A program made the position numbers and the translations under genes. A stretch of 64,000 bases of DNA from Octopus bimaculoides (Eukaryota). Numbering within the stretch: position 1 is the stretch's first letter; every line of letters begins with the position of its first letter. The notes below the pieces were generated by a model. The model was not told the origin of the DNA and searched no databases. It saw nothing but the letters and a program-made list of their open reading frames with translations. Positions 12,456 through 55,971 of the stretch are shown here, piece after piece. The stretch is from positions 40,399,423-40,463,422 of the forward strand of contig NC_068991.1 of NCBI RefSeq assembly GCF_001194135.2, read 5' to 3'.

Positions 12456-12599
12456 GTAAGTACATTTTGTAATTTTTAAGAGAAATATGCAAATTTATGA
12501 TTAATTTGAATTAGATTTTTATCACCTTTTTTTCTCTTTTTGTCAAGAAAGATAACTTCAATTCTTTAGATGTCATATTTGAAATAAATAAAAATATCA

Positions 12600-15898: not shown

Positions 15899-16544
15899 GT
15901 AAGTTCACTTTTTATTTATTTCCGTTCATCTCTATCACATCAAATATTCACTTTAAAAAATAACATATACTTTTTATTTTCTTTCTTTTCTTTTCTTTCT
16001 CTAGTTTCCAAGTAATTTAATTTAGTTTCTAGGTAAATGTTTTGTTTAATAGTTTTACTTTTTATGTTAATCATTATTTTTAAAAGTGGGTAACATGTAA
16101 AATTTTCTTTTTTTTTGTTTACATTTTAAATCACTCAAAATTCTATCTCTAATTTAATATCTATGCTTTTCATATGTCAAACCATAAATACTTACTTCAA
16201 TTCTTGTAAATATTCTTTACAAATCTTGTCCTTCATATTTGGAATTGTTCAGTCAGCAATAGAGTTAAAATAATACTTCTCAAAGCTTGCATTGAAGCAG
16301 TTCTGTTCTGTAGCAGCAAAGGTTGGACCTTTACATAAACACAAAACAAAAGACACAAATGCCGAACATGGCACTCTTTTACAATTTGTTGCTCAAAGAA
16401 CCAATAGTGAATGGATAAATACAAGAGAGCAGACTTTCTCAGCTGATAACATTTTATGCTAAAAATATTGATTTTGACTGGGCTTGCGTGGAGATGACCA
16501 AATATGAGACTGACTACTTTTTAAAATCACACAATTAGAGATAC

Positions 16545-27180: not shown

Positions 27181-30055
27181 ACATGCATATGTCTGTATGT
27201 TTGTTTGCAATTGCATTTATATGAAAGTCATGACATTCAAGTGTTGTTGCTGTTAGTATTTCTGTCAATAAATCATTGATTTGCTTTGTATCTTCAAAGT
27301 GGTATGAAATAAAAGATTTCTTACTTAAAAAAACTAAGAGTTAGCATCAGGTAGGACATCTAGCCATAAAACAATAACTAATACTAATATTTACCTAGCT
27401 CACACTAGCTTTGAAAAATGGATCTTGATATATAAAATATGCTTGTACTTGAATTTTTCCCTTTCTTATTAGTTGATATTGACTATTTATATGTTAATCA
27501 CATATTGTTAGCAAATGCAAAAGATCTGCAGTAAATAAAGTAAAATTAGTTATGTCTACTCTCTCCCTTTCTCTCGTGTGTGTGTACAAGAGAAGAGAAG
27601 GAGAGCAAGTGAGAGAGAGAGAGAAAGGAAAAGATAGTAGAAATTGTTTCATCACCTGCATGATTCAAACACTTAGTGAATTCAATCTCCAGGCATCCTC
27701 TTATCTGTGTGAAGAGAATAGCATTATAAGAAATAGCACCAGGTTCATCAGCAAGGAAATCCAAATGTTCTCAGATATTTGGATTTCTTTGCTGTAAATT
27801 CTAAAACTGTGCTAACCACTACACCAAAGTGACAACCCAACATTGATTGACCAAATTAAGAGTCTTAACCTAAGTAGCTAAGATCACATATATCTTTCAA
27901 TTTTGGTGGATTTGGTATGGAGGAAAGTGTTGTGTCCCTGACCATAACAGACCCTTTGAGATCTATGAGATCAATGTGTTTAACATTCCACATGAACAGT
28001 TACAACTCTGTTGAGAAAATCTGCGCAGGGAGCTTAAGAAGGTTGATGTTCTATTGGAAGGATTGTGATGGTTGGTATGGAATTGAGAAGTTGGAGATCT
28101 ATATACTTGGGTGTATGATTCATGGAGACATATGATATTACTCAAATGTTTTGTGATTCAGCTAAATGGTGTGTACACCAGCAAAACCATATTGTACAAA
28201 AATTACCATAGAATGCAATAAAGGCCAATCCATAAATTTGTAATCATTAGTCATAAACATTACAGATGGATGAAACTCTTGTCTTTTTAATATACCTGAT
28301 AATTATTGTGACTGGAAAACAACACTTGTTAATATAAAAACATTTAGATATAAACAGTAATATTTGAAAGTAGTTTTAGCATGCTTAACCAATGATACAA
28401 AACTGATGGTAATATTTTTACAAAAATCTAAGCAAAAAGAAAATGTTCCCAAGTGGAGTTACTATTCAAAGTGATAGATGAACAAAACATTATCACATAT
28501 TTGGCTGGCTAAAAGGACCAGGGTCTCTTCTTTAGTCAAAATCATTACTTACATGATACCAGTTCCATTTACAATTGTGTGAATCTGTAAAGATGAAATT
28601 TCAGGAAAATGAAACCATGTAGATAATGATTCTTGAAGGTTGTACATCATTTCTATACTTTTACATTGTGGAATTTCTAGTGCAATGGTTGGAACAGAAG
28701 CAGAACTGCTGTAGAAGTAACTTTTAAGACAACAGAACAAGCACATACCTAACCCACATAACAGATGGGAATTATTATAAAACTGATGTTCACTTTTGAT
28801 GTTGATGATGATAACAACAACATTATTATATGTTCAAGAATGGCAGTGATGACAGAAGTTTTAAGCTTTGGTAACAATGATTAACTATAGATTGTCCCAA
28901 ATAATTCCATGGATTCATGAAACCATCTCTGAGTGATGCAAATGTATTTTAAAATTCATTCATAAACAATTCTTAAATGTTTATCTCATTCTTGCATGGT
29001 GTCATAAATTTAAATATACATGCCTTACACACGTGTGAACACATGCACAGTTCTATATCTGTTGTCTGTCAGTTTAATACTTATTAGAGCTGCATCTATT
29101 GTCAATCAATCAGAAGTGGCAAGTTAAAAGTACTGCTAATTCTGTTCTAGGCATTGATCTCAGAAACACATTGTTGTAGTAGCTAAGTTTCCAGAACAAT
29201 ATTGGCAATGATTGGAATTATTTCAGCTAAATGTGTTTAAACATAACCATAAGTAAAGTTGTTAACAGTATTCATGAGAAGCAATATGAGATCTATGTAC
29301 AGGTCAATGGCTGAAGTCAAAATATAAACATAAAGGTGCTAACTCTAATAATTCATATAGTAATTTTTTTTTTTTACAACAGATATTTATTTATTCTTTG
29401 TTTACACTGATAACCTTCTTGCAATTACTTCAAACCACGCCTACTCCTATTCATTTTATTCATTTTATCTAACACCTTTCACTCCTCTTCATCCTTCTAT
29501 ACACAGGTGTAGAAATTAGAGTGCAAGAGTTATCTACACTGCATATGGGTTACATGCAGCATAGATAACTTTCATCACACATACATTATTCTTATGAATA
29601 TTCTGCAATTTTAGATTCATTTACCAGAAGTCACAACACATTGCTCTACTCATGTATCTGCAACAGTACAACTGCCATTCATATCTATTCAAAAATACAT
29701 CCAAATGAAAGTGAGAAGTCTTCACTCAACAAGCTACAACCTTTGTATCCACTCTCACTTTTAGTTTCTTCTGAACTATCCTAAACAATATACTGTCCTA
29801 AGCCTACTTAACATACTTGCACTTCATTCTTTTATCATTCTCCTCATAAAAATTAGATAATTCTTCTTCTTCAAATCTGCTGTCTTTGATGCTTGCTTCC
29901 CTATCAATATCCCCTAGTTGAATTCCATATATATCAGCCTCACGAATCTTGGCAATCATTTATATGAACACTGCTACCCATCTGAATAACAAAAAAATTA
30001 TGTAATAGTTTATCTCTTTGTTTCTTACACTAAATAATTTGTATCATTTTTACAG

Positions 30056-30181
30056 GTGATTTGCTTCCCTCTGATGGTGTCCTTATTCAGTGCAATGATT
30101 TAAAAATAGATGAAAGTTCGTTGACTGGTGAATCTGACCATGTGAAAAAGAGTGTAGAGTGTGATCCTATTCTCTTATCTG
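30056..30181 (+). CDS. PMCA: PMCA coding exon C: actuator domain with TGES motif (126 nt, phase 1-1)
   Basis: Translates as (G)[42 protein letters not shown], with TGES at 30124-30135. The acceptor is tcatttttacag|GT and the donor is TCTG|gtgagt. Confidence 0.96.
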
Positions 30182-30736
30182 GTGAGTTTCCTTTTTATAA
30201 ACCATTTTCTAATTTCATTACATCAGTCTCCATTATGATGGGTTCTGAAATTTAAAATGAAATGATTTCTTTCTAATGGTATTATGTATGATGTTTTTCA
30301 CTCAACTACATAATGTAAGTTATTTTTTAACTGCACCGAGCTTCAGTATTCTGCAGTTTTTATCACTAAAAATTTATATCATGCCATAAAAAATAGGAGT
30401 CCTCCTTTATCTGGTTAATTCTTATCAAAGGTTTTTATCTATATCTTAGCATTTTATAAGGTGAAACATTTTTTTGCTTTCAAGGTTCAGACAATTTCTG
30501 ATATTGCCTTAATTATTCTTAAAATTACTTTGTAGTAAATCTGTAATACTGCATGGTTTTATATTTTGACAATATGCAAACATAATTATTTGTAATCTGT
30601 AACTACAAGTTCACTTTCATTTATATATATATATTTAGTGATATCTATGAGAATTCCATGCTTTAATTTAAAAGTGCAGCTAGAGTTTAACTATCTAAAT
30701 ATTTTGTTTAAAAAAGAAATATAGTTCAGCCATTAA

Positions 30737-30945
30737 CCCTTTTGTTACCATATTTCTGTCAACATGTGCCGTCTTTGTTTCAATTAATTTTTAAAATAAT
30801 GAAGTATTTAGTAAAATAACTTTCTCGTTATTAAGCTTGGATCTGGAACAAATTAGCATAAAATTTTTATAGAAAATTATAATTTAGACGACTTTAAAAT
30901 AGTAAGTTTATGTCATGGATTGAAACAAGTCATCAAGTAAAAGAG
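30737..30945. mobile_element. TTAA-flanked MITE, family M2
   Basis: ttaa|cccttttgttaccatatttctgt...tttagtaaaataactttctcgttattaagcttggatctggaac matches 62759-62962. Confidence 0.65.
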
Positions 30946-31125
30946 GAGAAAAATCAGAATATGTTATGCAATGTTATTACCTGTTTGGACTAATAAACAA
31001 GCCACAAGCATATCTGAACTGGTAATAACATTGCATTTATACATATCACTGCTTAGCGATCCTACTTCATAGAATATATTATGTTATATTAATGAAAATT
31101 TTGGGGTTTTTTTTTCCTTCACTAG

Positions 31126-31269
31126 GAACTCATGTAATGGAAGGAAGTGGTAAAATGCTAATTACGGCTGTGGGCATTAACTCTCAAACTGGCATCATTT
31201 TTGCTCTGCTTGGTGCATCTAATCAAGATGACAAAGAAACAAAGAAAAAGAAGAAAGGTGAAGAAGGAG
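31126..31269 (+). CDS. PMCA: PMCA coding exon D: end of the actuator domain and Lys-rich first intracellular loop. It ends at 31257 or 31269 (two in-frame donors).
   Basis: Translates as (G)[43 protein letters not shown](GEEG). The acceptor is ttttccttcactag|GA. The donors are AAG|gtgaag (31258) and GAG|gtaact (31270), both phase 1. Confidence 0.93.
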
Positions 31270-31718
31270 GTAACTTTATATTTTTATTATGTAACACAAA
31301 ACAGCTTGCTTTTTTGAAGAAAAAAAATTACAATTCATAGATTCTATTGCTTTTTGTATACTCCAAAAAGTACTTTGTTCCTGATATCTTAATATTTTTC
31401 AGGAAATACATCAGTCAAATTATCTTTCTTTGTCAAAACTTTAAAACCATTATATGGATGGATTGTGTATATATTGAAATTTGTAGTAAGTCTTCAGTAA
31501 AAAAAATTGAGACACTAAGTTATTGTAATTGTGCAAAATACATAATTAGTGCTAATGGATAAAAGTTCATTCTTATCCTTTCCTTCCGGTTTGTTTTTAT
31601 GGCTGTAGTGGATCTCCATCATTCAACCATAAGGCTTTAGTTGTTCAGTCAACTGAATTGCTTGCTCCTGAATTAATGTGTAAAAGATTGGGCATCCCAT
31701 AGACATAGGTACTCTCAA

Positions 31719-32095
31719 CCCTTTAGCATTTAAACTGGCTATATCTGTCCAAAATATTCTACCTGTTTTATGTTGAAACCAGCTAGATCTCATACTTATT
31801 CTTCAATGTTGTTCTAAAATTAAACAGTCACATGCACATAAAAAGCACTAAGTCCACTCTGCTGAGTGGTTGGTGTTAGGAAGGACATCCAGCTGTAAAA
31901 ATCCTGCCAAAACAATCACAGAAGTCCAGTGCAGGCTTCAGCCTGGCTAGCTCTTGTGGTACCATCCCACCCATGCTAGCATGGAACACAGACGTTAAAT
32001 GATGATGATAATGATCACTGGAATCTCCAAGCTACACAAAAGTGTATTATTAATTCAAAACAATGGGAATAAATATGAACATAATTTACAGTAGG
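31719..32095. mobile_element. MITE family M1 carrying a nested RTE-tail insertion (~31834-32014)
   Basis: The MITE left half (ccctttagcatttaaac...ttctaaaattaaacagtcac) and right half (ggaatctccaagctac...taattcaaaacaatg) are split by gtggttggtgttaggaaggacatccagctgtaaaa...gacgttaaatgatgatgat. Confidence 0.78.
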
Positions 32096-33096
32096 TTAAA
32101 CATAATTTACAAGCGGAATAATTGTGAAAAGGCTATTCTTTTAAAATTTTAAATCAGTTAATATCACCAAATTTTCCTCTGTTCAGAGGACTTACTTTTT
32201 AGAAGTAAGCAGTGAGATACAATTGCTGTATGTTAACATTGATCTCCTAACCACAATCTTGAGTGTCATCCGTCAACCATTATATTGTGCTTTGAGCCAA
32301 CAAATGTAATCCTGCTTGTAACAGTTTGCATGATTGATAAAGAGGTCTACTCCTATTTATTGGACTGGATTACTGGCATTAGATAACTCATCTTGTTGTA
32401 AGGACTTCAAAAATATCCAAATTCAAAGAAAAAAAGATCCTTACAAAATAAGCTTAAAATACATATACATAGATATAAACATTGAAAACCTACCAAAATT
32501 ATTAAGATGCATAGCAGTAACTTAGTTACATTTGGAAGATGCTTATAAATAGGGATGTACATTTAGTAAATTTGATATTAATGATAGCAACAATAACAAA
32601 AGGTTCAGATAATATTATACAAAGTACCAGCTTGAGAGAAGATCATGAATTAGTAGTGATGAGGAAGTCTCTATACAGATTTCTCATTTCCATCATCATA
32701 AAAAGGCAAGCGTTTACATATACATCCTGATTTCTTGGTCAAACTACTGCCACATTCACTGACCATATTTAATGCTTCATGACATTTCGAAAGAGAATAC
32801 AAGACTGGAACTTAGCCTGGAAAGGAAAGAAATAAAGGAAGTCAAAAGCTAAGACTGTTTGACCAGGTGAATTTTTGTTGCTGAATTTGGACACTATTGT
32901 GAACTTATAATAAAATTTTAGTTTCTTTTTGACCTAATTGAAATATTCAAGATGTTCAAATATTGAAAGTTTACATAAATTTCAAGAAAATACATACTCC
33001 ATTCTAAACAAGCAAAAAAGTAGGGATTTTTTTTTATCTACTATATTCAAAACAACTGTATGTTAATTTATATGAGTGTGTGTGTGTGTATATATG

Positions 33097-33131
<35 letters not shown>

Positions 33132-35967
33132 ATTTATATAAAATATTGTTAGCATAAAATATATTAAACTGACAACATTGTTGTATGTGGATATGTCTAT
33201 GTACATTGATCATATTTGCCAGTTAATTAGCTTCATAAATACTTGTCATTGATAACTTATCAGATTTCTCTATTTCAGCAGGAACTTCTAATTTCAATTG
33301 TTTCTTTCAATTTAGGTGTATTGAATTGTGTCATCTGCAGCTATTCATAGAACACACTTCTAAAGAGTCTTCTTTTTCAGGTCCAATTTACAGCACTGCT
33401 TCTCTCTCAAATTTTTCTAAATTTGATGATTTTTGTAAGCACACGCTCAGAGATTGATTTAAAATTCTAGTTGTCTCACTTTAAAGAAAAAATGCTGTCA
33501 AGTCTGATTCCATCTCACTCCCACTTTAAAGCTAATTATATAGAAGCTTCTGGCAAAGCATTAATATTAGAGCACCACAATCTTTAAAATTCAGCATCCA
33601 TAGTAAATATCCAGAAATATGCAGTGAAACAGTTGAGGCATGTTTATTCAGATGATCTGGGTGTATAATTCGGAATAAAAATTCAAAGAAGGATGTGGAT
33701 TCCAAAAGTCCATAGAGAGTTAAGGTGTTAAGAAAGAAATGTGAAGAATTTTAAGAAAAGGAAGACATCTGGAAGAATGGTATTAAATATTGGGCTGAAA
33801 TACTGATGAAAGGTTGTTATAGAAGGCAATCAAAGAGAAGGCAAAGATGATATTGGATTGAACTAGAATCAGTTAACCTTAAATTATATGTTCCTGTCAC
33901 TTGAATGTTACTTTGAAACTATCATTTTCATGGGAGGTGGGGGGAAATCCTCACCTCCTCCACTTCTCTCTGTATTCAAATGCTAGGTTTTCTACATATA
34001 ATGGGGAATTTCCTAAGGTTATATCAGCTGTAATAAAATATATTGACTGTTATATTTTTACAACAGTGGTTGATGTAAACTTTTCTTAGTGAAAATTACC
34101 AAAACTTGCTTTTAGTTTTAAAATATGAGTTTCAAAATTAATTCCAAAATATCACTGAGAGCATGTTGACCCTTTTAGGGGTTCCAAATAAAATAGTTTT
34201 CTTTCATTTTTTTCTCTACTTCATAAATCTTTACTAATTTTCATATTAAAATTAAGGTATTAATTTATTAACATATGAAAATATATAATTAAGATAAATA
34301 AATTGTATATTGCTGCATGTTTTGGTATCTTTTCTGTTAATTGCTTTAATGAATATTAAATATGAATGTCCCATACTCTTACCTTTATGCTACATTTAGT
34401 CAAAAGCTAAATGAACAGCTGACAAAAAAAAGAATTTTTATCTAAGAAACAAATTTCTTTGAACTCAGTTAAACATCTAAAAAAGAATTAAGCACTATTG
34501 ATTAGCTGTTTAATCTTTTTTTATTGTTTTGTTTTTTTATATATAAGACCAAAGGTGAAATGAAATAGGTTTCAGAATAAACAGGTTTAGAGCCAATCAA
34601 ATCAATTGTATTCTTCTACTGACTTAGGAATAGTCGAACTTACAATTTAAGAATTAGTTAAAGATGTTTCTATTTAAATGATGAGGAAATAATTTTTTTC
34701 TCCACTCCCAGATGCATAAATGAATTATTTTTCAGTTTCCTTTTTATTAGTTTTTTTTTTATAATTTCATATTTTATTTCAAATGTATTGTGCATGTTAT
34801 TCTTTTGAGCTTGTCTTCATGCAGGTGAATTTTATTGCAAATTCTTTTTTTTTTATTGACAAGCATGCTTAGCATCCTAAAACAACTCTAAGCATCTCAA
34901 TTGGTCTGCACTGTGATTTAAAATTAGCTCTTAAAATATAGAAGTATTGATTAGTTTGCCTAATATAAAATCTTTAGAATGTTGCCATTTAAGTACCTGC
35001 TAAGAAATATACAGATTTTAAAAGAAAAAAAAAAGATAATGTAATTGGGAAAGTTTGATCCGGCAGTTTTATGCTGACTTTAATGCCAGTTTACCATTTA
35101 GGTTTTTTTGTTTTTTTTAAATCTGAAATCTAAATGTTTGGTATTATTTGTTACCAAATACATACATCAGCCAAAATATATTAACCTGGCTACTAAACTC
35201 TGCAGGTTTTTCTGCACAAAATTGGTATTTTTATTTTCAAAATCAATAGGATAGTATTGTTATTTATAGATTCATAGTATAAAGTATTCTCATCATTGAT
35301 ATAAATGATTATATAATCCAAACATGTAATATTTCATACATCTGAGTTGTTTCCAAAACAGTCAAAATGTTGAGTAACTTTACATGCAATTGATGGGTAA
35401 CCTACCTAAGGTCATTCAATCATCTAGAAATAATAAGCTAAATCTTCCCCCCAGATCATACTTGCTTTGCTATACCATCTTAAGAAGAAAAAAAAAGGCC
35501 TGTCCTTAGTTCCTTGCACATAGAAAAAATATAGGATGGTCATGACTGGAATGCCTTTTGATCATAAACCTTTTTGATCAAGGCTTAGAGCTAAACAAAA
35601 ATAACTGTATATTCATAGGTTATAGTGCCTAATTTGCAATTATAGTCTTTTTATTTCTATGAAATGAATATATTATGCACATCTACATACCATACAGTCA
35701 TACAGAAATTTTTTTTTAATATTCTTCCATGTGTGTTAATACTTAATTTTTAGTTCATAAATTTACAGTGATGGCAATTATTTTTCTACCTAAACATTAT
35801 TCTTTGACAAACTCCTTAACTTACTGGCTGCAATCATGTCATTATTATAGCAACTGTAAATCCTTAAAAACTAACCAATCGGTTTATAAGTTGTATTTGA
35901 TAGTTAAGCAAGAGAACATTTCAATTAATGGCTTGTATTTATACAAATTTTAATTAAAATGCTTCCT

Positions 35968-36400
35968 TATCATCATTTTAATGTCTGCTTTTTCATGCTT
36001 GCATGGGTTGGACAGAGTATATTGAAGCAGATTTTCTACAATCAGATGCCCTTCCTGTTGCCAACCCTCACTTGCTTCCAAGCAAGGTGTCTTTCTCCAT
36101 GGTCAGACATGATTTCATAGATTATTGGAAATGAATGACACAGCTTGTGTGACATTGAAATTCATTTACAACTATCACATAATGTCATGACAAGGAGATG
36201 CAAACATACATACACACACATACACACATGCATATGTATGTATATAGACTACAAACCTGTTTCAGTTCTGCCAAATCCTCTAGCAAGGCTTTGGTTAGCT
36301 TGGGACTACAGTAGAAGACACTTGGTCAAGCTATACAGTGGGACTGAACCCAAAACCATATGGCTGGGAAGCAAACTTCTTAATCAAACAGACACGTCTG
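35968..36400 (-). mobile_element. Composite SINE (family-1 head and RTE-type tail), second copy
   Basis: catcattttaatgtctgcttt...gatgcccttcctgttgccaaccctcac...tttacaactatcac...(CA)n...ttcagttc...cagtgggactgaacccaaaaccatatggctgggaagcaaacttcttaa. Confidence 0.75.
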
Positions 36401-37096
36401 TGTATGTATGTATGTATGTGTGTGTGTGTGTGTGCGTGTATGGATAGTTACAAATTGCTCAGATTGTAGTTGACACTTAAATTAATAGGTTACACTATCT
36501 CTAAAGTAGATAAATTCTAATGAAGAAAGTATTAAAACTTTTATATGGTCATAATTGATTTACAATGTACCTGTTTCCTACATGTTAGAAATAAAGAGAA
36601 AGATAGTCACATTTCCAGTATAACAAAAAAAGAGAATTAATCATTTTAAGGTCATCAAGATCAATTAAAATTATATTTCTCTTTATAATCGATCAGCAAT
36701 CAACATATCAAATCGTTTGCCATTGACAAACATAAACGCTTCAATGCATTCAATTTTCAAAATTTAACAGTTTATTTCTTCTTTCTTTCTTTTTTTTTCC
36801 TACTATTTAACATAAAATATTTCTGCTAGAGACAATTAGTGTATCTTATCCAGTGCTCCCCTTCCCCCCTCTCCACCTCCAAACTTTGCATGTGTATATG
36901 TTACCCACCTCATGTATTTAACATTGTTTTCATAATAGGTGTTCTGCCAAGTTTTGCTACTGCAGCCAGACCTTGGTATATAAGTGTTTGTTACTTGCTA
37001 GTGTTTACATTTAATCTTATGGTTTGCTAGGAATCATTTCGGCAGTTTCTTGTTTGGATTAACTCTAGAAATAGACAATAACCAATAATTGTTGTT

Positions 37097-37103
37097 GTTA
37101 TCA

Positions 37104-37145
<42 letters not shown>
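37097..37145. repeat. (TAT)n microsatellite
   Basis: tatcatcattattattatt... run. Confidence 0.95.
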
Positions 37146-37147
<2 letters not shown>

Positions 37148-40100
37148 CTGTTCAATGATCTAAATGAACTTCTACATGTTAACTTCACTGTATTGTTGGA
37201 CACTGATCTGAATTCATATTTTCTATGAACATCTTTAATATATTATGAAATGTATGCTACAAATATTTTGTATTTAATTCAGAAGTCTTTGCACACTATA
37301 TCCTGACTTTTACACCATTTTAGAGAAATTTTAGAGAAATTGTTTGGTTATTCCAATATGGAGTGTAAGCAACATTTTATACAGTCCATTAGTCTAAAAT
37401 TACAACTCTTTTTATACAAATAGTTTTTTTTGTTTTTTCTTTTAATTACTCTTTAGATTTTAGCCTACTGTTGTGCAGTAATTAAATTTATAAATAACAG
37501 AAATAATTTAATTTAGATGAGTTAATTGTATAATCAATGAATTTAAGTCAATATTTCTGCTTCATGTTTAAGTATGGAAAGTAACACGTGAAGATTGTTA
37601 CTTCTGTTCCAGTTTTGACTGAAGGTATTTATTGCTTTCTTTAAATGACCAAGCCAAGTAATATAATTTTGTAGGTATGAACAATGTATGCTATGTCAAT
37701 AAATATAAATGTGGATAATGATAATGATGATTTAAATTTGACATGGATTTTTTTGTCAATTTCAAAAGAAAAATTTTAACATGGAGTGGAACATTAAACC
37801 AACAAAGCACTACTCCTTCCTCTCCCAATGCTGTCATTCTTTGTTAGACTGCTAAAGCATTTTCACATCTTCTTTCATGGTTACACAAATTTTTAAATGC
37901 CTTATTCATAACACAGTTCTTCTTACGCATTCTATATAGTCAGCTACTCTTGGCTAATATTCTCCTGTCCCTATAGTATACCTCCCATCAACAATCATTT
38001 TCATCTAGATACTTGTGTCCAATTTTGAGAGCTGAGCTCCAATTATATTTAGTTTTCCTGAAGACTATTGTTTCTAGACCATTCCAGATTGGAAATAAGG
38101 ATGAATAGATGAAGCTGGGGCAATTAGTATTTAAATTGAATTATTTCAGCTTGTCAGAGAGAAAAAGCATGCAAGCAGTAATTTACAGAGGAATACTTGT
38201 CTAAAGCAGAAAGATTGGACATAGTTTAGATGGAAAGGTTAACATTATTGAATTAAAGAGAGAAAAATGGTACAATATTAAAAAGGTTTGTTTGAGGATT
38301 ATATAGAGTCTGTGGTGTCACTGATTGATGGAGAACCAGTGAGTGGAATTTCTCAAGGCTTTCAGTTGCTATGTTTTGTTGTTTGGGTGTGAATTCTTTC
38401 TACCTATTGCTGATTTCTCTCAAGTTTTGTTGGCTGATTTTATTTCCTACGTAGCTATTGCCAGCTTCTAATGAACTATTCCATGATTTGGTTATACATT
38501 AGTTGTAAGGATTGTTTCTCTCATTTGCTTAACATTCTCAAAGGTGTTAGGAATGACACTCAATTAATGTCATAAATCGTCAATGGAACTGTTAGGGGTC
38601 CAACTAAATAACTTGAAAGTCAGTTTGATCATGTCAGTAGTAAGATGACATCTATTATGTATAATTGATCAAATAATTTCATGGGTGAAAGCACCTTAAC
38701 CTTTGAGTTTGACATAATTTTGGAGTGTGGGAGAGATCAAACATGTTCAGAGACTTGGAAAACTGATCAAGACAAATTTAGTAAGAAAATTTGCTGCAAG
38801 TACAAGCTGTTCAGAATTGTACTGAAGCTTCACTTGAGCTTTGACAATCTAATTACATGCTTACAGGTGTCGTTGAATTTGGTTATCTGCTCAGTTCAGA
38901 AAAAGACTACTTCAGCAGATGCACATTGAGGCATGAGAAAGTGGAAACTAAACACTGTTATGGGAAATCATTGTCAGAAAAAAACTTGATTGACATAAAT
39001 ACAATAATTTTCTTTTTAAGCCTTCAGTTAGCTCTGATCTAAGAGATTCTAACCAGGATCATTCCTTTTTGTTTTCTGAGCATAATATATCTGGAATTAT
39101 GTCCTTTATATCATTTCTTTTCTAAGACAAAGATTGTGACTTGATAAAGATTTCTTCAACAGACCAAGTGACTCCCTTGGGTTTGATTGAGCAGTGGTTA
39201 GATTAATGTGCCACTTTCAGGACAGTGTTTGAGAAAAGAATGTGGGGTTGTTGGTTATTATGGATGTAATCAGTTACAAGAAGTGTAGTTAATGTTGTGG
39301 TCAAATTAATGATTAGGACTGTTTTTATAGATAGGGGGAAAATGTCAAGCACGCTAAACCTGGAACCAGTAAACATAATTTCTCCTTAATGATTATTTGT
39401 AAATTATAGTAATCTTTCTGCATTTTCTTTCTCACATTAGTTATATAGAATACTTCTATTTGCCTGCCATCATGTTGCTTTATTTTTCTTCTATACATTT
39501 GTCATTTGGAACAAACTGCTTGCATAGATTCTCATTGCTTATGGTGTTTAAAATTTTAGATGAGTAACTTATGTTTAATCATTGAGATGTATGATAGGTT
39601 TGTCCTTTTACTAGCGACATGATATTAAAATAAAATCTACAAAAGCTCAGTGTATCAGTATAATGTTAACTTGTCTATATTAAAAGCTTGTAAATCTAGA
39701 GTTGTTTTAAATACATTATACTATAGACATTATAGTCAAAAACTATTACATCCTTTTCTTTCTTTTGGTTTACATAAATAACATATTTATCTAGCTGTTA
39801 TAAATAAAAACTGAAATAATTTCTATGTGATGTGTAACTATAACAATAACATCTGTTCTACTGTCATGTCACTTTGTAATTCTCATCTACATTTAAAATT
39901 TTCTAAATCATATGTACCATCTAAATATAAGCATAAATTAAAAAGTATTTAAGATATTTTTGTCAGTTGAAGTGTCAGGCCGAGAATAAGTATTCAAAGA
40001 ATATCTCTTCTAAACTTTCAAACCACTTTCTATAATTTCACTTATCTCCAAAATTTCTTCAGTTATTTTGTAATTTTCTCTCTAATACAGCATTTGGGAG

Positions 40101-40453
40101 AAATATTTATTATGTGCACGTGCACACACACACACACAAATTTTTGTTATACCTGTACATTTTTTAAACAACTTACAAACAAGTAGTTCTTGCCACACCA
40201 ACAATTCTTGTCTTATACTCATCTTAACCCCAATCATCTTCTGATGTCATAGCTAAAATTTACTCTTGTAAGAAAATAACTTCCTAGAGAAGTATAGTTT
40301 TTTCTTTAGCAAGAATATTGGAACTGTTTCATAAAAAAAAAAAGTCTGAAGTGTTGTAGAAACAGTTTAAAACCTATTTTCCATTTTGCAAAGCAACAGC
40401 AAGTAATTTGGTATATTGAATTTTCACCTTTATACACATATTAACAATGGGTT

Positions 40454-40558
40454 NNNNNNNNNNNNNNNNNNNNNNNNNNNNNNNNNNNNNNNNNNNNNNN
40501 NNNNNNNNNNNNNNNNNNNNNNNNNNNNNNNNNNNNNNNNNNNNNNNNNNNNNNNNNN
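40454..40558. other. Assembly gap (N run) 160 nt upstream of the candidate microexon. Other gaps are at 21796-21842, 52065-52145 and 55532-55971.
   Basis: N runs in the sequence. Confidence 1.
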
Positions 40559-40718
40559 TTTTTTTTTTTTTTTTTTCTTTTACTAAAATGTAGTTGTCCA
40601 AAAGGAAGCTGCCGATGTTTAAGTCATGTTCAAACGCTTGTTCTTGGATTTGTGACTTGTGCCAAATTTTTTTGTGTGTCAACTAATTGTGTTTTGCTGC
40701 TTTTATCTTTGCTTCCAG

Positions 40719-40754
40719 GAGCACAGTGTAATCCACCTGGACAAAATGTACCAT
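40719..40754 (+). CDS. PMCA: Candidate 36-nt alternative microexon of PMCA at splice site A (GAQCNPPGQNVP)
   Basis: Branch-like aactaat at 40681-40687, a pyrimidine tract with TGC motifs ending gcttccag|, no AG from 40624 to 40716, and a consensus donor CAT|gtaagt. The 36 nt are open in phase 1, matching exon D. There is no transcript evidence. Confidence 0.62.
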
Positions 40755-43700
40755 GTAAGTTTCTCACCCAATTTTGTGCTGCCAACAATTGCTGGTTGCC
40801 ATTGCCAACTTTTGTGCTCTGATGTGATTGGTCGTATATGTCTGTGCGTGCTTGTTATGTATGATAGCTTCTGTAGCTGCCGCTGCTGTTTTGACTTAAC
40901 TCTTGCACTGTTTGTTGTTTCACTGTGGTGGTTATATTGCTGTAGTTGTTCAAACTACTTTGGAAATAGGCATTCTTGTTCACTTTTCCTTAACTCTAAT
41001 TAAAATCTCATCTGATGAATGGAATATCCATTGACAATGGTCATGGTTGACTTGAATACATCAGAGAAAAACTAAACTATCTACTTCGCATTTTTTTTTT
41101 CTCGCTTCTGGCTTAGGGTTATGAAATCCAATTATTTAAATAAAAATCTATTTAGAGTGTTATTGTGGCAAGTGTTTATGAAGTTTTTACAAAAAGGTTG
41201 CCTCACTCTAAAGCAAATTAGATTTTGGTTGTGGAGTCACTACTCTTTGCAATTCCACACTGATTTCCCCCTAGCCCCCTTTTTTTTAACTTTTTTTTTT
41301 TAGTTTGGCTCAAAGTCACCTAAAATAAAATACTTAATACTATTTTAAACATACCACCTGCAGTTATTCCCCAATATCAAATTGTTGATGTTTTACTTTC
41401 ACATCTTGTATTTCAAGAATGCCTTCTTTTGCTCCAAATTAATGATCTACCTGTAATCCTTTTTACCTTTCTGTATATCTTTTCACATTTCTAACATCTT
41501 TAGTTAATTTTCTTTCCTTTTTTTTTTTCTGAAAAAAAAAACATCCTCATCATTTTAAGTATCTCTAAAATAAATAGCTTGATAAGAAATGAAATTAGAA
41601 TTCAAATAAATTAAGTAAATCGCTAAAACTATATTTGAAAACTAGTTATATATTATCAGTAAATAATGCAAAACAAAAGCAGAAGTTGTGCGTAACTATT
41701 TACATAGAATTCTGTTTTGATATTGTTGAATTAATAACAAGAAAACTAATTTTTATAATCTTGTATGTGATTGATTGAAATTAAAACTTAAGACGATACA
41801 ATCTATTACAGATTTTATGCATGTTTCAATATAAACGTTATTATATATATATATATGCATGTCCATCTATGAAGAATTTTCTAATTTAATGTTTCTTTAA
41901 GTATTCGAATTATTTAAGTTTCTTTTGTTGCTACTATTTTAAGATACTCTAAATATCCTCTTTGCTATTTCTGGTACATTAAACATCTTTGCTGCTTCAA
42001 CACTCATTTTCAATATTACATTTGTCTGCCCTGCTGTTTAGGCTCATAATGGAGTCAGCTATAACTGAACATTCTTAGTGCTTTTTTGTTTTTTCTTCCT
42101 TCCCCCTCCCTTCAAATATCCATCACCTATCAAGCTTCTGCTTTAAAAGTTAACACTAAATGCAAGAGCTATGTCCTTAAAGCATCTAGGCTTACGGGTT
42201 TAAATATTTTAGTTGCTCTTTTTTTTTTTTTAATTTAAGAATATTGCCCACATAAGACAGAGAATACTAGATTTAAATTTTATTTCTCTTAATTACATTT
42301 TTTTTTTCTTTTTGTTAATTTTTATGCCCAAGATTTATTTCTGTATAGAAACAAACCTCAGCTAAATTTTTCTTTGTTTGTTTGTTTTCCAATAAACATC
42401 TAAAACATTTAGACACGCAAATTCTTTGTTTTTAAAATATTAAATATGTTTTTTTTAATATATTGCTAAAATATCTAGAAAATTAATAAACCATAAGCAA
42501 TAAATTTTAAATGTTCTGGTTTTCACAATTTTAAGTAAGGAAATGAAACAACATAAAGTCATCATCTAAAATGTTATATTTTGTTTACATAGTATTAAGA
42601 ATGCAATTACTCGCTAAGTTTATTCACAGATCTCACTCATACAGACTAAGAAATTCTTAATAGTTGCTCCCTGTTAAAATGCCTTCAGGACTGGGTGCTC
42701 TTGTCTAACTGTAGACTCCAAATTCTGTCATACTTGTATCTCTTGGCTTGTAGCTGCTTGCATACTAATGAGTTCTCAATACTTACCTGTGTGGCTGGCA
42801 AGGACTTTTTTTATTTAACAACTGCATTTTGCTTTTACTAAAGTTTATTTGAAGAATTTAAAATAATACAATAATATTTGGTGTATTTGTTTTTACATCT
42901 TTTTGATCTAATTAAATTGACATTTAACTTCAATTAAACTTCTGGTAAATGCAAATAAATTCCTGGTACATGGGCATCACTTGTACTTTTACTGTTTATT
43001 TCACTGTTCTAACTCTTTTGTCTACAGATACCTGTATTCATTTGTTTATTGCTTCAAATGTTATTAATGTTGCTTTCATTCTGTTCACCATTGTTATATT
43101 TTTCAGACAAATTTTACAATGTATTTCATGAATGAATTTTTGTTTGTTTGTTTTACAGTACAACTTGTTGTTTGTGCTATATAGAAATCAATTAAATCAT
43201 TACAAAATGATTTTATATATATTTTTATCATAATATAAACCCTTAAAAATGTATGCCAGTAACTAACAATTTTTTTCTTTCATTCAAATATCATTCTCTA
43301 ACTTCTACATTTTGTCAGCTGATACAAAACTTAGCTCAGCATAGTAAAAATAGTCAATACTACTCTCCTTTCCTAAATGCCTTCTTTTCTCAAGTTAAAA
43401 CTTAGTGGATCCTAAATATTCAACTAATGTTTGAAAGATTGACAAACTATTTAGTGGGGTATGGCAAAACATTCAACTCTATTAAACCTGACTAAGTAGG
43501 AAGTTATTATTAGTGGAAGGTGTAAGTCCTTAGTGAGCCATATCTACATATCAGTGTCTTTTCTTGTTTAGAGCCACTAACATCCTGAACGCTTTGTCAG
43601 TAAGCATGAACATTGCAACCTCCCATTCCCTTTGAAATATCTAAAGCCTCATCTATATCAGAATCAATAGCTTTCATTATTGTTATAACTATTATTTTGA

Positions 43701-43872
43701 AAAGCACAATGACTAGTTTTTGAATATGTGCATCACAGTACATATTTTGGTGTGTACCATAGAAAATAAGACAGTTTTCAAAAGTTTTACTTTATATAGA
43801 GGTTTATATCTATTTTTAAAATCACTGTCATCCTCATTATCATTATTATTGTTATGAAGTTTTGTATGATAA

Positions 43873-46164
43873 CACTGGTCAACATTAATTTCATTGCCAA
43901 AGTTATTGGAATAATGTTTATGGTAGGTTTAGGATGCTGATCTGAATATGGTATCAATTTTACCAGATTGGCACTAGTGCTTGACATAACTGAAGACCCC
44001 ATATTTGAAAATTTATTGACCTTAGCTTTCTGATCCCTTATCATTTTTATGACAGTTGCTGAACTGATTTTTAGGTATTAAATCATCCAATTTATTTCAT
44101 AGTAAATGATAGAATTAAAAATATTATTTTTAATAAAGCATCAGAACCTATTGACATAAAATGTCAAAACAATACACTAAAAATCATTAAAAAATAAGGA
44201 AAATGTTTTATGGCATCTTATACAGTAATAGTCTACAAGACAATATATAGATACACTGGCTAATTAAATATTAAAATATACAAATCAATGCCTTAAAAAA
44301 CACTGATTTTTTTTTCTTGTGTATATGGTTTAGCTGGACATTCATGCTGAAGGGTCTAGCACTAATCTACCATTATGTGTCTGTCCCATCTGCCTTGATA
44401 CCTTTCATTTATTACTCTTATATCCTGATGGAACCTCTCCCTTTGTTCCTCACTGAAATCTTCAAGATTCTCTGGAAATATGCCCAAGTGGTTATTTTCA
44501 GAAAACTACAGTCTGAAGAAGCAAAAAATATTCATATTCTTCCTTTTAGTTTTTCAATTCTGAAGTCCAGGAATGAGCTGCAAATGTACTTGAAGCAATC
44601 ATCATCATTGTCCAAACCTTTGGCAAATTGCTTCATCTGTTCAAGTCTGATATAGAAGGGATGAAAAATGATATTTTCTTTGAAGTAATGATTGTCTCCT
44701 TTGAAGTTCATGTCACTTTTTGTCAATGATCTTGCTTTGCTCTACAATCTCATAAGCTTGTGAAATAAGGTTATTTCATGTACCCAGTTTACTGTCCAAG
44801 CAACCAATTCACCATCTTTAGGTCAAAGCAAACAAACCACTGTTGCTCATGATAGAGTTTCTACAAGACAATTACAACATTTTCATATTCTGTAAACTTA
44901 ATTGAATGAGTAATTGGTAAAGACACCTAGCTGTTTCTATTGTGTAATAAAACACATTTCCATGTTCTGGTAGAGCTGTCTATGAAAAGCCACCAATCTT
45001 GTGGGTGATATTCTGGTAGTCCTATTTGGAGAAAAAGTCTCGGAGATGTTATTATCAAAGACAAAATCTTCATGTTTGCTGAAGTAAGGAAGAAGTGCTT
45101 ATTATCCCTTTTTGATAAGCTGTTACTTAAATTTCTGATTTTTTTATTTTTATCCTGGATACTTAGATTCAATGAACTGCTTTGAAAAACTGGTGCTTCG
45201 TACCAGATCATTAAGTTTTTTTTTTGTTTGTTTTGGTTTTTTTTTGAGAACTGCTTTGGTGTTATTTACTTCTCTGGTAAGCACCAAGCTCTGCATTTCA
45301 CATTTCTTCAAACTCTGGCAAAGGAATGTCAGACAGAAGGGTAAACACTTGTATGGGAATTTCATTGCTGTGTGATGCAGGCCACTTCACAGATTCCAAA
45401 TCAGGATGCTCCTACGCTTCTTGTAGCAATAGAACCCTTTCACAACCACTGTGTTGGTTTTACAGTTCTTCACACACCATAGGCACTCAAAAGTTTTAAT
45501 TTTTTATTCTTTTTCCATTTGTCCATTGTCAAAAGGACTCTACATAGATTTTTACATACTATTTAGTGAGCCCATGACTTATCTTGCTCTCTAAGCTTTA
45601 CTCCCAAATAAGAAAGGTATGGTTATTATATTTTTATGCTTTACTGTAAATATATTCAAGCAAAATACGTTTGGATAGTTTAAACAGATTCTTTATGGTG
45701 AACTCATATTTACATCTTTACCTCCCAAAAATAATGAAAAATTGATTATTAAATCTGAGAGACAATTTAAAATTAGATTTGAAATAAAAATTAAGATACT
45801 AATAATGAAGAGTAAAATATGTAAACAATAACTTTGTTGCATATTTCAGCAAGTATATTTGGTAATGTTCAATGATTCAGTGATATTATCAAATGCAGCA
45901 TCACTTGTTGGACATCCCAAGTTAGCCAAGTTTTCAAGTGACCAAGGTATTACAATCTGAGACCTAACTTAACTCCTAACCTACATTTTGATCTGATTTA
46001 GAAAAATCCTTGTGTAACATTATAATTTGAGAATTCCATTATTTCAAAAACTAGTGCCAATCTGGTAAAACCATCATTTTTGGATTCAACATCCCCAAAT
46101 TACCATAAATTCATTTGCATAATGTTGGCAATTAAAATTTTTTTTTTCCTTTTGTTGGCCAGAG
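43873..46164 (-). mobile_element. Chapaev3-like (CMC superfamily) DNA transposon relic, 2292 bp, long imperfect TIRs, TAA TSD
   Basis: The ends are taa|CACTGGTCAACA ... TGTTGGCCAGAG|taa. Subterminal inverted matches include ttttaccagattggcactagt (~43958) and actagtgccaatctggtaaaa (~46050). The minus strand reads EYHPQDWWLFIDSSTRTWKCVLLHN and FHPFYIRLEQMKQFAKGLDNDDDCFKY (WRLFIDSS..SLK.VLLHNG; LPPLHIKLGLMKQFVKAL). Confidence 0.75.
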
Positions 46165-47639
46165 TAATGTGACTATAAGTATCTCTTTAATATGGTTAAC
46201 TGTAAAATAAGTCAAATGAAATACCATTTCTTATTGGTGTAGTCAATAAGTTACAAACTGGTATTTACCTCTCTGTTGCCACTCATACTCTCGTATGGTT
46301 TGCATGTAAGCATAGCACCTGCTTTCTGCTGCAATTTATTGCAACTATTGCTTGTATCAGACTGCAGTATTTTTCACTTTGTTTTGTTTATGCATTTGTT
46401 TTTTGTTGTTTTTATCCAATTTTTCATATTTTAAACTTTTTAAATATTTTCTTTTAATTTTTTTTTCATTGTTGTTGGGAATATGTACTTTGTTTCCCTG
46501 AGTTCTTTTTTATCAAGGTCTCATGGGCACAAAACCTTATCATCAGGGTGCTCATCATTTAAAGTGACAGATTTTTGTACATGCTTTGATTTACTTTTAT
46601 ATTGTTTTTGAACTTAATTTTCTATTAGCCATTGTAAGGTTTGATATCATTGCATTGGAAATATTCTGATAATCACAAAAGATCCAAATGATGCAAACCA
46701 GTTTAGGATAGTTTTAAGAAATAACCTGTATCATAGTTTAACCTTCATTTCATTCTTAGTAAAAAAAAAACACTTCATAGACACCATTGGTAAAAAATAA
46801 ACCATTCTGATTTTCACTAAGTTTACAAACTTCTTAGATAATGTCATAAGGTATTTAATAAAAAAAAACATTTGAATTCAGCAATTAAGAATCACTCAGC
46901 CATAAGCTATTAAGGATTTAATTTTCCAGTTGATAACACTTTATCCTAAAAGACACTATCTACCCTACAGAGTTCAAAGTAGCTTATTCTCATAAAAATG
47001 TTTTTAGAAAAAATGATACAATATACAACAGCTCTATAAATAAAGATTAAACATTATTTTTTTTGCATATAAAACATAGAGATAAATTACCATATTGAAA
47101 AATTAATGCAAATGAGCCCTCTACTACACTGCTTAATGAAAATCATGGGTGTCAGAAGACAAATGTTGCACAACTAGGGTCTCTGATTTTTTTATTGCAC
47201 AAGGACATAAGAACATCATGCAAGTATGAATTATCAGAAGAAGAAAAAAAGAAAATAGTTCCTTTCTTATACATAAAATAAAAACAACTTATCCTAGCCA
47301 ATATGCCACAAATATTAATATGTAGGGGCCACGTACCTGACAATAGTCATTACAACAGCAAAGGCATAAACAAAGTGCATACACTATCTATCATACTAAT
47401 GCTGGTCAGTTTGATGGTTGTCAAATGGTTGAAACATTGCTGAAGAGAAGCTCTGGCTAATTAGATACATATTCACAAAACAGAAAGAAGGAAACCAGTC
47501 ATGGTGTCACTGAAATGTATCTGAAAAGAAAGCTATTGGCCACTATGTAATTACATTAATGCATGTACACACTCTACTGTATGACCAGTGAATCAGTCGT
47601 AGACATATTTAAATAGTGTTACCTTATAAGATAATAGTG

Positions 47640-47646
<7 letters not shown>

Positions 47647-47690
<44 letters not shown>
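47647..47690. repeat. (TA)n microsatellite
   Basis: Pure atatat run. Confidence 0.97.
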
Positions 47691-47692
<2 letters not shown>

Positions 47693-47989
47693 ATTTTGAA
47701 GCATCAATGAAGCTATAGAGTGATGCACACGCATTCAACTATGAGTGCATTGCATCTTCTAGCACAAAATGTTGTAAGCTAATGACATTCATGATGTAAT
47801 GTTTTATATCCTTGTCATTTTACTTTTTTTTTATTACTGCTCTGTACTTGATTGATGCTTTGTTCTGAAGCATATGTGTATTGAGTTCTAACATCAGAAT
47901 ATTAGTATCACTATGCCTAAATGAAATAATGAAAGATGAATTAATAGATATGTATTTACACACAGAACTTATATACTTGTTTGTGTCTG

Positions 47990-48165
47990 TATTTGTATGT
48001 ATATACATGTGTGTGTGTATGTATATATGTGTGTGTGTGTATATATATATATATATACACACACACATGCACACACACACACACACACATGTGAAGCTGG
48101 CAGTACATCATTAATAGTTAAAATTGTGTCGAACTTTTCTAATAGATAAACACACACACACACAC
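47990..48165. repeat. Compound (TG)/(TA)/(CA) microsatellite region
   Basis: Alternating gtgtgt, atatat and cacaca runs. Confidence 0.9.
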
Positions 48166-49229
48166 GCAAGTGTATTCTTATATATGTGGATATATATGTA
48201 CAACTTCTCAATGTGGTACTTAATCACATGTAATAACCATAAATGCTAGAGATCAATATTTTACATTGCATTTAACTATAAAAATCCACATCTTCAGTGC
48301 ATTCCATGAAATATGTTGCATATACCATGAAAGAGGCTACAAATGAGAAAGAGAACAAAACACATTTAAAAGAATAACAGAAGGAAAAAGAGAGTATTAG
48401 TGACATTTCAAGTATCCATTTCCTACAGCTGTTTCATTAATTGTTATGATATTTTATTAAGAACCATAAGTTACATAGTTATGATATGACTATATAATTG
48501 TATAGCTATGTAGGAAATGAATATGTGAAATATTTTCTTCCCTCTACAGTTGTTGGTCCAAATTTTTTTACTTTCTTTATCCATTGTAGCCTATTCTATA
48601 TTATATACAACTTACTACATGGAAAGGCAATTAAGATGTGAACTTTTATATTTGTGTGTGTGTATACACACATACATAGTCTCACACATAGGGAGAAACC
48701 AAACTGCTTGTGAGATGATTCTACCATCATGCACACTGTGGTACATTCATATTGATAAGAAAAATAATGTTACATCTGCAATCTGCGTATGTTCCTGCAG
48801 AACAAAAGCTGAACTGAAAACTCACTTGTGAGCCCATGATCATGCAAATTCATTGAAGAGAGGGCTCTCTTCTGGCAAGAAGTAACAATCAGCATGTGTG
48901 TGTGTATATATATATATATTTTAGATGTACATGCACACGCGCAAGTTTTGACTCAAAAGAACAAACCCATGTTCCTTTATGCAGATTTTTCAATGCTGGA
49001 ATTGTAGAATTGCAGATGATGATTAGTGTTACATTCTACAAGAAATAGAACTCTAGGTGACTCTGTGTGTGTGTATACCTACACATACATGCTCATGCAT
49101 GCACACACTCATGTGCCCTTGACATCAGCAAAACTTTCAGCCATATCTAACATGCAAATCTTCAACCAAAATGGCCCACCAAGGTAATCTGCATTCATCA
49201 CTTCCAATTATATTGTACCTTTGTGTGTG

Positions 49230-50285
49230 AATGTCGGAGTTATTTATACCCCAGTCTCAAACAAATTTTGTGTCCCTGGTTTTTCCCCTCCCCCCACTCT
49301 CTTCCTTCTATACATCAATGACCTACTTGCCTCCATGTCTAACACTGCTCAATCTTATGTAGATGACACCAGCCTTCATTCCTCCCTAACTTTCCCTGAC
49401 CATGCATTATCCACATGCAGCCATGACACTACATATCAAACCTGCATCAATTCCATAAAGAAGCCTTGAGAGCATCCCACAGTGGGGCCATGTTAAGTTA
49501 TCCCTTTTAACAGCAATAGAATTTAGCCCTTTAGCATTTAATCCAGCCATAACCGGCCCAAATATTCTACCTGTTTTATGTTCAAACTAGCCAGATCCAG
49601 CTTCTTACACCAACCCACCAATGTCTATCTAAAATTAAACCCTCACATCTTTGGAATCTCAAAGCTACAAGCTAATACATGATTAATTCAAAACAATGTG
49701 ATTAAATAAGCATTACATTTGACAGAGTAATCTGAACACTAAAGGGTTAAGCACTAATTGTATGAAGGTACCACTATCACACCACATCCCCTCTAAACAT
49801 GTGCAGCACTCAACCTAAAGCTCTCATAGTCACTCCAGTGCAGGGTCTCACTGTCACTGAGAATCTCTCCTGGCAAAAGCACATCCTTAACATCCTATGA
49901 CTGCATCCCCAAAGACTGGCCGTTCTCTTCAGTGTGAGAAAATATTTCAGTCCCAATAGATGCTGTCACTCTACAAAGCTCATGTGAGGCCCACAATGGA
50001 ATACTGCTCCCACACCTGGGACATTGCTGCTGCTACACTCACAGATATTGCAGACCACATCCAGAAGAGAGCAACTTGCAGGTGTGTTTCTTTTTTCTCA
50101 CTACTATAAAGGTGGCTGGTCTCATATCTCTATTACTCAGGTGCTCTCAGCCACTTACCTCTTTACCTCCCATTACTCTGCCACATTCAGTCTCCCTAAC
50201 CCACACTAACCATTGCCTTCTGGAAATTTTTCCCAGCTCATATCTTTCCTTCAAGAATTGACGTGTGATAGCCAAATGCAACATT
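49230..50285 (+). mobile_element. 5'-truncated CR1/L2-like LINE (RT C-terminal part), interrupted by a MITE
   Basis: Reads VPGFSPPPTLFLLYINDLL...QSYVDDTSLHS (PQGS.LSPTLFL.YINDL..YADD). After the MITE it reads GLTVTENLSWQKHILNI and LYKAHVRPTMEYCSHTW. Confidence 0.82.
49527..49746. mobile_element. 220-bp MITE, family M1 (piggyBac-like, CCCTTTAG...CTAAAGGG ends, TTAA flank)
   Basis: ttag|ccctttagcattt ... gaacactaaaggg|ttaa. Homologous copies lie at 18531 and 31719. Confidence 0.82.
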
Positions 50286-51916: not shown

Positions 51917-52149
51917 CATAAACTACGGTTTAAGCAACATATTACCTGCTTCTGGACGCCCTCTTCCCAAGACGGTACCCATACAGGTGATCCCCAGGAG
52001 TGCCTCCGGATTTAAACATCCCCTGGTTGCTTGGATGCTTCAGACTACCCTTGAAGGATCGAGGNNNNNNNNNNNNNNNNNNNNNNNNNNNNNNNNNNNN
52101 NNNNNNNNNNNNNNNNNNNNNNNNNNNNNNNNNNNNNNNNNNNNNATGG

Positions 52150-55531: not shown

Positions 55532-55971
55532 NNNNNNNNNNNNNNNNNNNNNNNNNNNNNNNNNNNNNNNNNNNNNNNNNNNNNNNNNNNNNNNNNNNNN
55601 NNNNNNNNNNNNNNNNNNNNNNNNNNNNNNNNNNNNNNNNNNNNNNNNNNNNNNNNNNNNNNNNNNNNNNNNNNNNNNNNNNNNNNNNNNNNNNNNNNNN
55701 NNNNNNNNNNNNNNNNNNNNNNNNNNNNNNNNNNNNNNNNNNNNNNNNNNNNNNNNNNNNNNNNNNNNNNNNNNNNNNNNNNNNNNNNNNNNNNNNNNNN
55801 NNNNNNNNNNNNNNNNNNNNNNNNNNNNNNNNNNNNNNNNNNNNNNNNNNNNNNNNNNNNNNNNNNNNNNNNNNNNNNNNNNNNNNNNNNNNNNNNNNNN
55901 NNNNNNNNNNNNNNNNNNNNNNNNNNNNNNNNNNNNNNNNNNNNNNNNNNNNNNNNNNNNNNNNNNNNNNN

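Follow-up and report, generated by a model that had tools for sequence, protein, structure and literature searches.

Within a 64,000-nucleotide (nt) stretch of the Octopus bimaculoides genome (RefSeq assembly GCF_001194135.2, contig NC_068991.1, positions 40,399,423 to 40,463,422 of the forward strand; hereafter the window, with positions counted from its first letter), a 36-nt cassette microexon is located at 40719-40754 on the plus strand of what reads as a PMCA (P2B Ca2+-ATPase) gene. The microexon is used alternatively, and the choice between inclusion and skipping depends on the sample, also within one study and species. A preliminary description had called it from splice-site architecture alone, and the exon found in this way, within an intron longer than 30 kb, is genuine. 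In vertebrates, splicing at site A of the PMCAs is a classic case of small optional exons that steer membrane targeting and lipid regulation of the pump. As a whole, the best explanation of our data, to which we assign a probability of roughly 0.6, is a genuine cassette of the PMCA site-A intron with inclusion governed by an eMIC-type activator acting via conserved UGC motifs.

The RNA evidence consists of spliced contigs (Logan) from 18 public runs, with lengths of 0.3-5.3 kb and depths of 6-440. Contigs placed on 40560-41000 cover just 40717/19-40754 (four runs, 3.4-kb contigs, depth 270-443). On the 5' side these same contigs extend into ...AAGAAAGGTGAAGAAGG, which is the upstream exon D to 31269, and on the 3' side into TGCTTGCTAATGAGCCAGAGGGGAATATTG..., the exon following the microexon in the mRNA, encoding LANEPEGNI. 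Conversely, contigs placed on exon D proceed past 31269/70 into AGCACAGTGTAATCC... in runs X1, X3, X8, X10, X15, X18, X19, X4, X5 and X6. The identical 36 nt are hence found between exon D and the next exon in spliced RNA, with donor 31269 paired to acceptor 40719 and donor 40754 to an exon beyond the window. Both junctions suggested as a check in the preliminary description were observed, and splicing occurs exactly at the predicted boundaries and in the predicted phase 1.

The included form alone was recovered in 14 of the 18 runs, the skipped form alone in three and both in one, which bears out the anticipated alternative use. Runs X16 (depth 131) and X17 (depth 53) join 31269 straight to TGCTTGCTAATGAG..., the skipped form, whereas X18 and X19 contain the included form, all four runs being of one study and one organism. 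Likewise X47 is skipped, and X1 and X11-14, with the same organism label, are included. The deep run X37, of the window's own species, displays both junctions at depths of the same order. Most public RNA data sets thus have inclusion as the predominant state, and some same-species samples skip the exon fully. Since the contigs of a run keep dominant paths and lose minor variants, these tallies reflect dominant forms and are not percent-spliced-in values, and the differences are at the level of samples rather than tissues. The same property lends some weight to an essentially constitutive exon, where the skipped transcripts represent splicing noise or artefacts of the Logan contigs: the all-or-none appearance is partly an artefact of consensus contigs, and most runs hold the included form only. 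Against this, the skipped form is the only one assembled at 131x and 53x in two samples with included-only sisters, X37 carries comparable amounts of both, and the flanks are more conserved than the exon (see below), a hallmark of regulated exons. We therefore consider a constitutive exon very improbable.

The exon downstream of the microexon, TGCTTGCTAATGAGCC..., has no match further on in the window, even as 8-10-mers. As it is absent from the remaining ~23 kb (40755-64000), the downstream intron exceeds 23 kb or the exon is located in a gap; the gaps at 52065-52145 and 55532-55971 could hide it. A protein search with the junction peptide returned nothing, and a search for octopus PMCA isoforms gave just exon-sized open reading frame (ORF) fragments from many animals and no full-length octopus PMCA. 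Automatic gene models very probably contain the microexon, because it is present in the dominant public transcripts.

The microexon is situated 9,450 nt downstream of the end of exon D (31269), congruent with the spacing of about 9.4 kb given earlier, in the context ...caactaattgtgttttgctgcttttatctttgcttccag/GAGCACAGTGTAATCCACCTGGACAAAATGTACCAT/gtaagt, with cag as acceptor and a consensus 5' splice site, GTAAGT (40755-40760, plus strand), that is unchanged in all species compared. It is spliced in phase 1-1 and translates as G-AQCNPPGQNVP-(L) (insert peptide GAQCNPPGQNVP); being a multiple of three, it leaves the reading frame open both when present and when absent. In the included form, V is exchanged for GAQCNPPGQNVPL after KKKKKGEEG, which lengthens the cytosolic linker behind the actuator domain (A-domain) segment by a net 12 residues. 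The insert had been proposed to enter directly after the poly-Lys. A Lys-rich stretch does precede it, but since donor 31269 is the one used, the insert follows KKKKKGEEG rather than Lys itself.

A candidate alternative donor, AAG/gtgaag (31257/31258; 31252-31263, plus strand), is found 12 nt upstream of the used one. It is in phase and good-looking, its use would delete GEEG, and it would coincide with the vertebrate junction directly after the K-run. We reject it as a functional site, as no contig in the 18 runs ends at 31257; its earlier proposal as an alternative to 31269 is not sustained. In the distant species, GTGAAGAAGGAG at this position serves as GEEG coding sequence (P0093).

The assignment of the host gene relies on its 5' part. 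Using tblastn with a PMCA probe, we located upstream PMCA exons at ~12260-12457 and 15670-15906 and exon C (GDLLPSDG..., TGES motif) at 30056-30180, with the donor 30180/gtgagt, all on the plus strand. Exon D (...KKKKKGEEG + g; 31125-31269, plus strand) is a constitutive upstream exon, spanned from 31125 to 31269/70 by contigs in 18 runs. It ends in phase 1 with ...GGA g, a split Gly codon, and the 3' end of exon C, AGTGTAGAGTGTGATCCTATTCTCTTATCT, stands before it in every RNA contig. The peptide of exons C and D recovers human PMCA1 (6a69; E = 1.3e-25) and PMCA2 (9gsd; E = 3.7e-25), far more weakly the plant ACA8 (E = 7e-9), and no SERCA at an E-value of 1e-3 or below. In this comparison, the actuator-domain segment, with the TGES motif and GTHVMEGSG, is nearest to PMCAs among P-type ATPases. 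Judged by these sequences, the gene is a PMCA, the 3' part of which falls beyond the window.

Site A of the vertebrate pumps is positioned in the first cytosolic loop beside the phospholipid-responsive region, and its exons affect targeting. Their lengths are multiples of three, so that the frame is kept (PMC8835232); in PMCA2, exons of 33, 60 and 42 nt generate the w, x, y and z variants, and x and z variants occur in other ATP2B genes. The w-insert of human PMCA2 comprises Gly303-Lys347 (PMC5641333) and therefore enters after K302; in an alignment to the PDB sequence this K302/G303 point falls inside the octopus K-run. The octopus cassette has in common with site A of vertebrate ATP2B1-4 the protein family, the cytosolic loop between transmembrane segments 2 and 3 (TM2-TM3), insertion directly after a Lys/Glu-rich stretch following GIIFxLLGA, and its nature as a small in-frame cassette that is included or skipped by sample. 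The octopus upstream exon ends in a split Gly codon (phase 1), and bird PMCA1 fragments end ...KKEKK-G, which would be consistent with a similar phase-1 junction after a G. By contrast, one cassette was detected in octopus rather than three, and the octopus junction follows an extra GEEG, 6-7 residues further on, as measured in an ungapped alignment of a low-complexity region. GEEE-type tails are present in other invertebrate fragments too. Functionally and positionally, the microexon appears to occupy the intron corresponding to vertebrate splice site A and to belong to site A, as had been suggested. The peptide (GAQCNPPGQNVP, or GLQSNPPGQTVP in distant species) displays no convincing similarity to the vertebrate inserts beyond the initial Gly; as far as it can be compared, it is unlike them, as previously stated, and homology to the vertebrate site-A exons is positional only.

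Conservation was assessed at two distances. Against close relatives, represented by DNA contigs of three organism labels, a block at 40582-41087 (plus strand) is near-invariant, its 506 nt differing by a single substitution and a 1-nt insertion. Control intron sequence in the same relatives shows 33 substitutions plus indels at 41088-42250 (1163 nt) and 7-9 substitutions plus three indels at 40142-40453 (312 nt). Ordinary intron divergence is thus ~3%, as opposed to one substitution per 506 nt in the block (Fisher p about 1e-4). An assembly gap of 105 N at 40454-40558 lies in the upstream intron, 160 nt upstream of the microexon. The gap is undersized, with ~321 nt between the flanks in a close relative as compared to 128 in the window (105 N plus a T-run, 40454-40581), and it consequently conceals where the conserved block begins upstream.

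More distant loci were reached through a stop-free ORF in a non-coding frame (40659-41000), called as a gene in other assemblies. They comprise L002, on the same 110-kb ENA contig as L001, and L003-L008, from Logan contigs of six runs. Exons C and D on the L001 contig are 80-84% identical to the window. When the 20.5 kb of L002 are compared with the full 64 kb, alignment is limited to the microexon block plus a single island of 47 nt. The orthologous exon (L002 10259-10294, L003 178-213) is again 36 nt long, flanked by cag and gtaagt, and encodes G-LQSNPPGQTVP-L (GLQSNPPGQTVP), with 9 of 12 residues kept and no stop or frameshift. It is identical at 29-30 of 36 positions (6-7 changes), and the last 52 intronic nt at 50 of 52. 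Also conserved in the distant lineages are the CUAAU, the three proximal UGCs, six downstream UGCs and a 91-nt AG-free zone. A scan of the 10 kb after exon D of L001 by blastn, peptide and motif/splice searches yielded no orthologue, a false negative since the exon sits ~12.4 kb after exon D in the distant species. An exhaustive HMMER search with the non-coding-frame ORF returned the same two loci only, and no evidence from squid, nautilus or other molluscs. Splice sites, length and frame are hence kept in two distant genomes, in agreement with the conservation expected in related cephalopods, and the pattern shows purifying selection on the exon and the reading frame, strongest in the flanking intron sequence.

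A second conserved island is found at 42679-42764 of the window (L002 15675-15760), separated from the microexon by ~1.9 kb on the 3' side and surrounded by intron that does not align. The sequence reads ATGCCTTCAGGACTGG(G/A)TGCTCTTGTC... and GCTT(G/C)TAGCTGCTTGC, and has a UGUAGCUGC motif in common with 40873-40886. The island could be a distal splicing element or a further small exon.

Constraint of this kind might also reflect a unit unrelated to splicing, such as an intronic non-coding RNA (ncRNA), an enhancer or an antisense gene, with the exon being incidental. Indeed, the conserved block reaches ~330 nt past the exon in close relatives, and a 114-amino-acid stop-free ORF in another frame spans it. 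Yet the homologues of this ORF are confined to the same locus in other cephalopods, where they are riddled with indels, and conservation in distant species peaks exactly at the acceptor region, exon and donor. Furthermore, a search of Rfam yields no family even at E <= 1, the folding energy is ordinary (z = +0.86) and the block contains no meaningful repeats; with all three checks empty, an obvious ncRNA or looping structure is ruled out. We find a primarily non-splicing role hardly credible.

The acceptor region itself is unusual. A 93-nt AG exclusion zone extends over 40624-40716 (plus strand; 91 nt in both distant lineages), and AG-AG intervals of at least 93 nt amount to only 34 of 3,611 (0.9%) in the window. 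Both this zone and the aactaat beginning at 40681 were verified as described earlier. The latter includes a branch-point-like CUAAU (40683-40687, plus strand) that fits the CUAAY consensus, with 40686 as the probable branch A, and is invariant in all aligned species. A pyrimidine tract follows (40688-40718, plus strand; AG at 40717-40718), of which the last 25 nt are 84% pyrimidine (Y), with UGCs at 40695, 40698 and 40710, all three invariant. These UGCs are located at -24, -21 and -9 from the exon, a density of at least three TGCs per 30 nt that is reached in 0.7% of windows (P about 0.007). Their number agrees with the earlier account, but the last one does not lie 6 nt before the AG, as given there: it occupies -9 to -7, and 4 nt separate it from the AG. 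The constitutive exon D, used as a control acceptor, has an AG-free zone of 50 nt and no TGC.

Downstream of the 5' splice site, an intronic UGC/YGCY cluster (UGCUGCC, UGCUGG, UGCCA twice, GUGCUC and UGUAGCUGCCGC) covers 40761-40889 on the plus strand, with UGCs at 40777, 40780, 40790, 40803, 40815 and 40878 kept in distant species. It is the densest of the window in both motifs: around the microexon, TGC counts are 15-16 per 300 nt against a mean of 4.1 (standard deviation 2.2), and YGCY counts 16 per 300 nt against 2.4 (standard deviation 1.75), each the maximum of the 64 kb. GCUGC is enriched 17-fold. A conserved GUGUGU element, UUUUUGUGUGU, adjoins the branch point on its 5' side, and no GCAUG was found around the microexon.

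In flies and mammals, exons that depend on the eMIC domain carry a cis-code made up of a long AG exclusion zone, UGC near the 3' splice site, a long UCUC-rich polypyrimidine tract, a strong CUAAY and conserved flanks (Torres-Mendez et al. 2022, PMC8797185). Like the bilaterian eMIC microexons (Srrm234/Srrm3/Srrm4), the octopus cassette is a short in-frame exon in a membrane and ion-handling gene, with a long AG exclusion zone, UGC less than 25 nt from the acceptor, a long pyrimidine tract, a strong CUAAY branch site and highly conserved flanking introns. It differs by its length of 36 rather than at most 27 nt, by the lack of UCUC and by a consensus rather than weak 5' splice site. Four of the five published features are thus present and conserved, UCUC being the missing one, which makes an activator-dependent microexon of the eMIC type the most likely mechanism; we propose it with moderate confidence, from the sequence, and the AG-free zone, proximal UGCs and branch-like motif picked out in the preliminary description fit the published code.

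In such a mechanism, the microexon would be too small, and its acceptor too unusual in its 93-nt AG-free zone and UGC-interrupted pyrimidines, for unaided recognition. A trans-acting activator probably binds the conserved UGCs that shortly precede the AG, with the downstream UGC/YGCY cluster as a further probable target, and cells devoid of this activator would skip the exon. The single most likely regulator would be a neuronal activator of the eMIC type, because the architecture is that of the published Srrm234/Srrm3/4 eMIC-dependent neuronal microexons, and we hypothesize that inclusion is regulated in neurons. If vertebrate site A is taken as a model, the linker length beside the acidic-phospholipid-responsive region would be tuned by the insert, and the change could influence membrane targeting or lipid regulation rather than catalysis.

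Several observations weigh against this proposal. The exon exceeds the strict 27-nt microexon limit, there is no UCUC between branch site and AG and hence none of the alternating UCUC enrichment, and the Cys of the insert is not conserved, being Ser in other species. The included form in 14 of 18 runs would fit equally well an exon that is broadly included and repressed in particular tissues, instead of one activated specifically in neurons. Moreover, YGCY is the Muscleblind motif and GUGUGU an RBM24-type motif: as the UGCs lie within YGCY, Muscleblind-type factors fit the same motifs, and the GUGUG upstream of the branch point would suit RBM24-type factors. The exon may accordingly be real and regulated, but by another factor, either Muscleblind-like on YGCY, where downstream sites promote and acceptor-proximal ones may repress, or of the RBM24/CELF type on GUGUGU/UGU. 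With either kind of factor, the switch would follow muscle, differentiation or developmental state and not neuron identity. The flanking introns do hold the YGCY clusters expected from the sequence of a Muscleblind-regulated exon, at the window maximum, with most downstream sites conserved and with the GCUGC enrichment given above. The conserved UUUUUGUGUGU directly 5' of the branch point, the breadth of inclusion, which suits a broadly expressed activator, and a report that RBM24 controls Atp2b2 alternative exons in mouse cochlea (PMC10018040) point in the same direction. On the other hand, it is specifically for eMIC targets that a long AG-free zone has been described in combination with a strong CUAAY and a UGC no more than 10 nt from the AG. 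We regard regulation by these other factors as possible but on balance unlikely, and retain the eMIC-type activator as our preferred explanation.

Bivalve PMCAs likewise carry extra residues at the site-A region relative to human PMCA2z, an 'insert' of 36-39 residues in Tridacna squamosa and Crassostrea gigas that was discussed there for apical targeting (PMC5641333, PMC6987452). In those reports a single cDNA or gene model was set against the human sequence, without alternative splicing being shown, whereas the octopus element is a discrete 12-residue cassette that is included or skipped. It appears doubtful to us that the octopus cassette and the 'x' exon of vertebrate site A (36-42 nt, in the same intron and phase) are orthologues, both descending from a microexon of the bilaterian ancestor that was already alternatively spliced under an eMIC/UGC code. 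Regulated microexons shared by fly and mouse amount to only four positional overlaps (PMC8797185); if such an ancestry were true, PMCA site A would be one of very few regulated microexons common to protostomes and vertebrates.

Other features of the introns were also recorded. The stretch 31001-31057, just upstream of exon D, is 90-95% identical to unrelated RNA contigs with high expression (depth to ~1,250 in X1), which suggests a transcribed interspersed repeat. In the downstream intron, 41478-41545, 41814-41925 and 42199-42250 have genomic depths of up to ~20,000x as compared to ~50x for single-copy sequence, with many contigs continuing into unrelated sequence; these segments are high-copy repeats or (TA)n. 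On the minus strand, antisense to the gene, 5609-5647 encodes a weakly PMCA-like peptide, ADLERRKACFPKN (tblastn E = 0.36), probably by chance and possibly as a decayed exon fragment. Finally, part of 30000-49999 resembles sequence mostly found in human runs, probably due to (CA)n/(TG)n microsatellites near 48000 and 50400 (HTHTHT translations).

In the searchable literature, site-A splicing is described for vertebrates only, with molluscs represented just by a longer loop in single sequences. The same literature contains no description of the octopus PMCA cassette, and nothing specific on an Atp2b microexon and Srrm4, on squid PMCA splicing or on octopus microexons. The cephalopod cassette therewith offers a test case for two views of site A, as a regulated microexon of ancient origin or as a place where exons have arisen repeatedly. 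Its intronic control code is more constrained than the coding sequence and resembles that of the eMIC microexons, and the two isoforms, 12 residues apart, provide a handle for studying how Ca2+ extrusion is adjusted in the neurons or other tissues of cephalopods.

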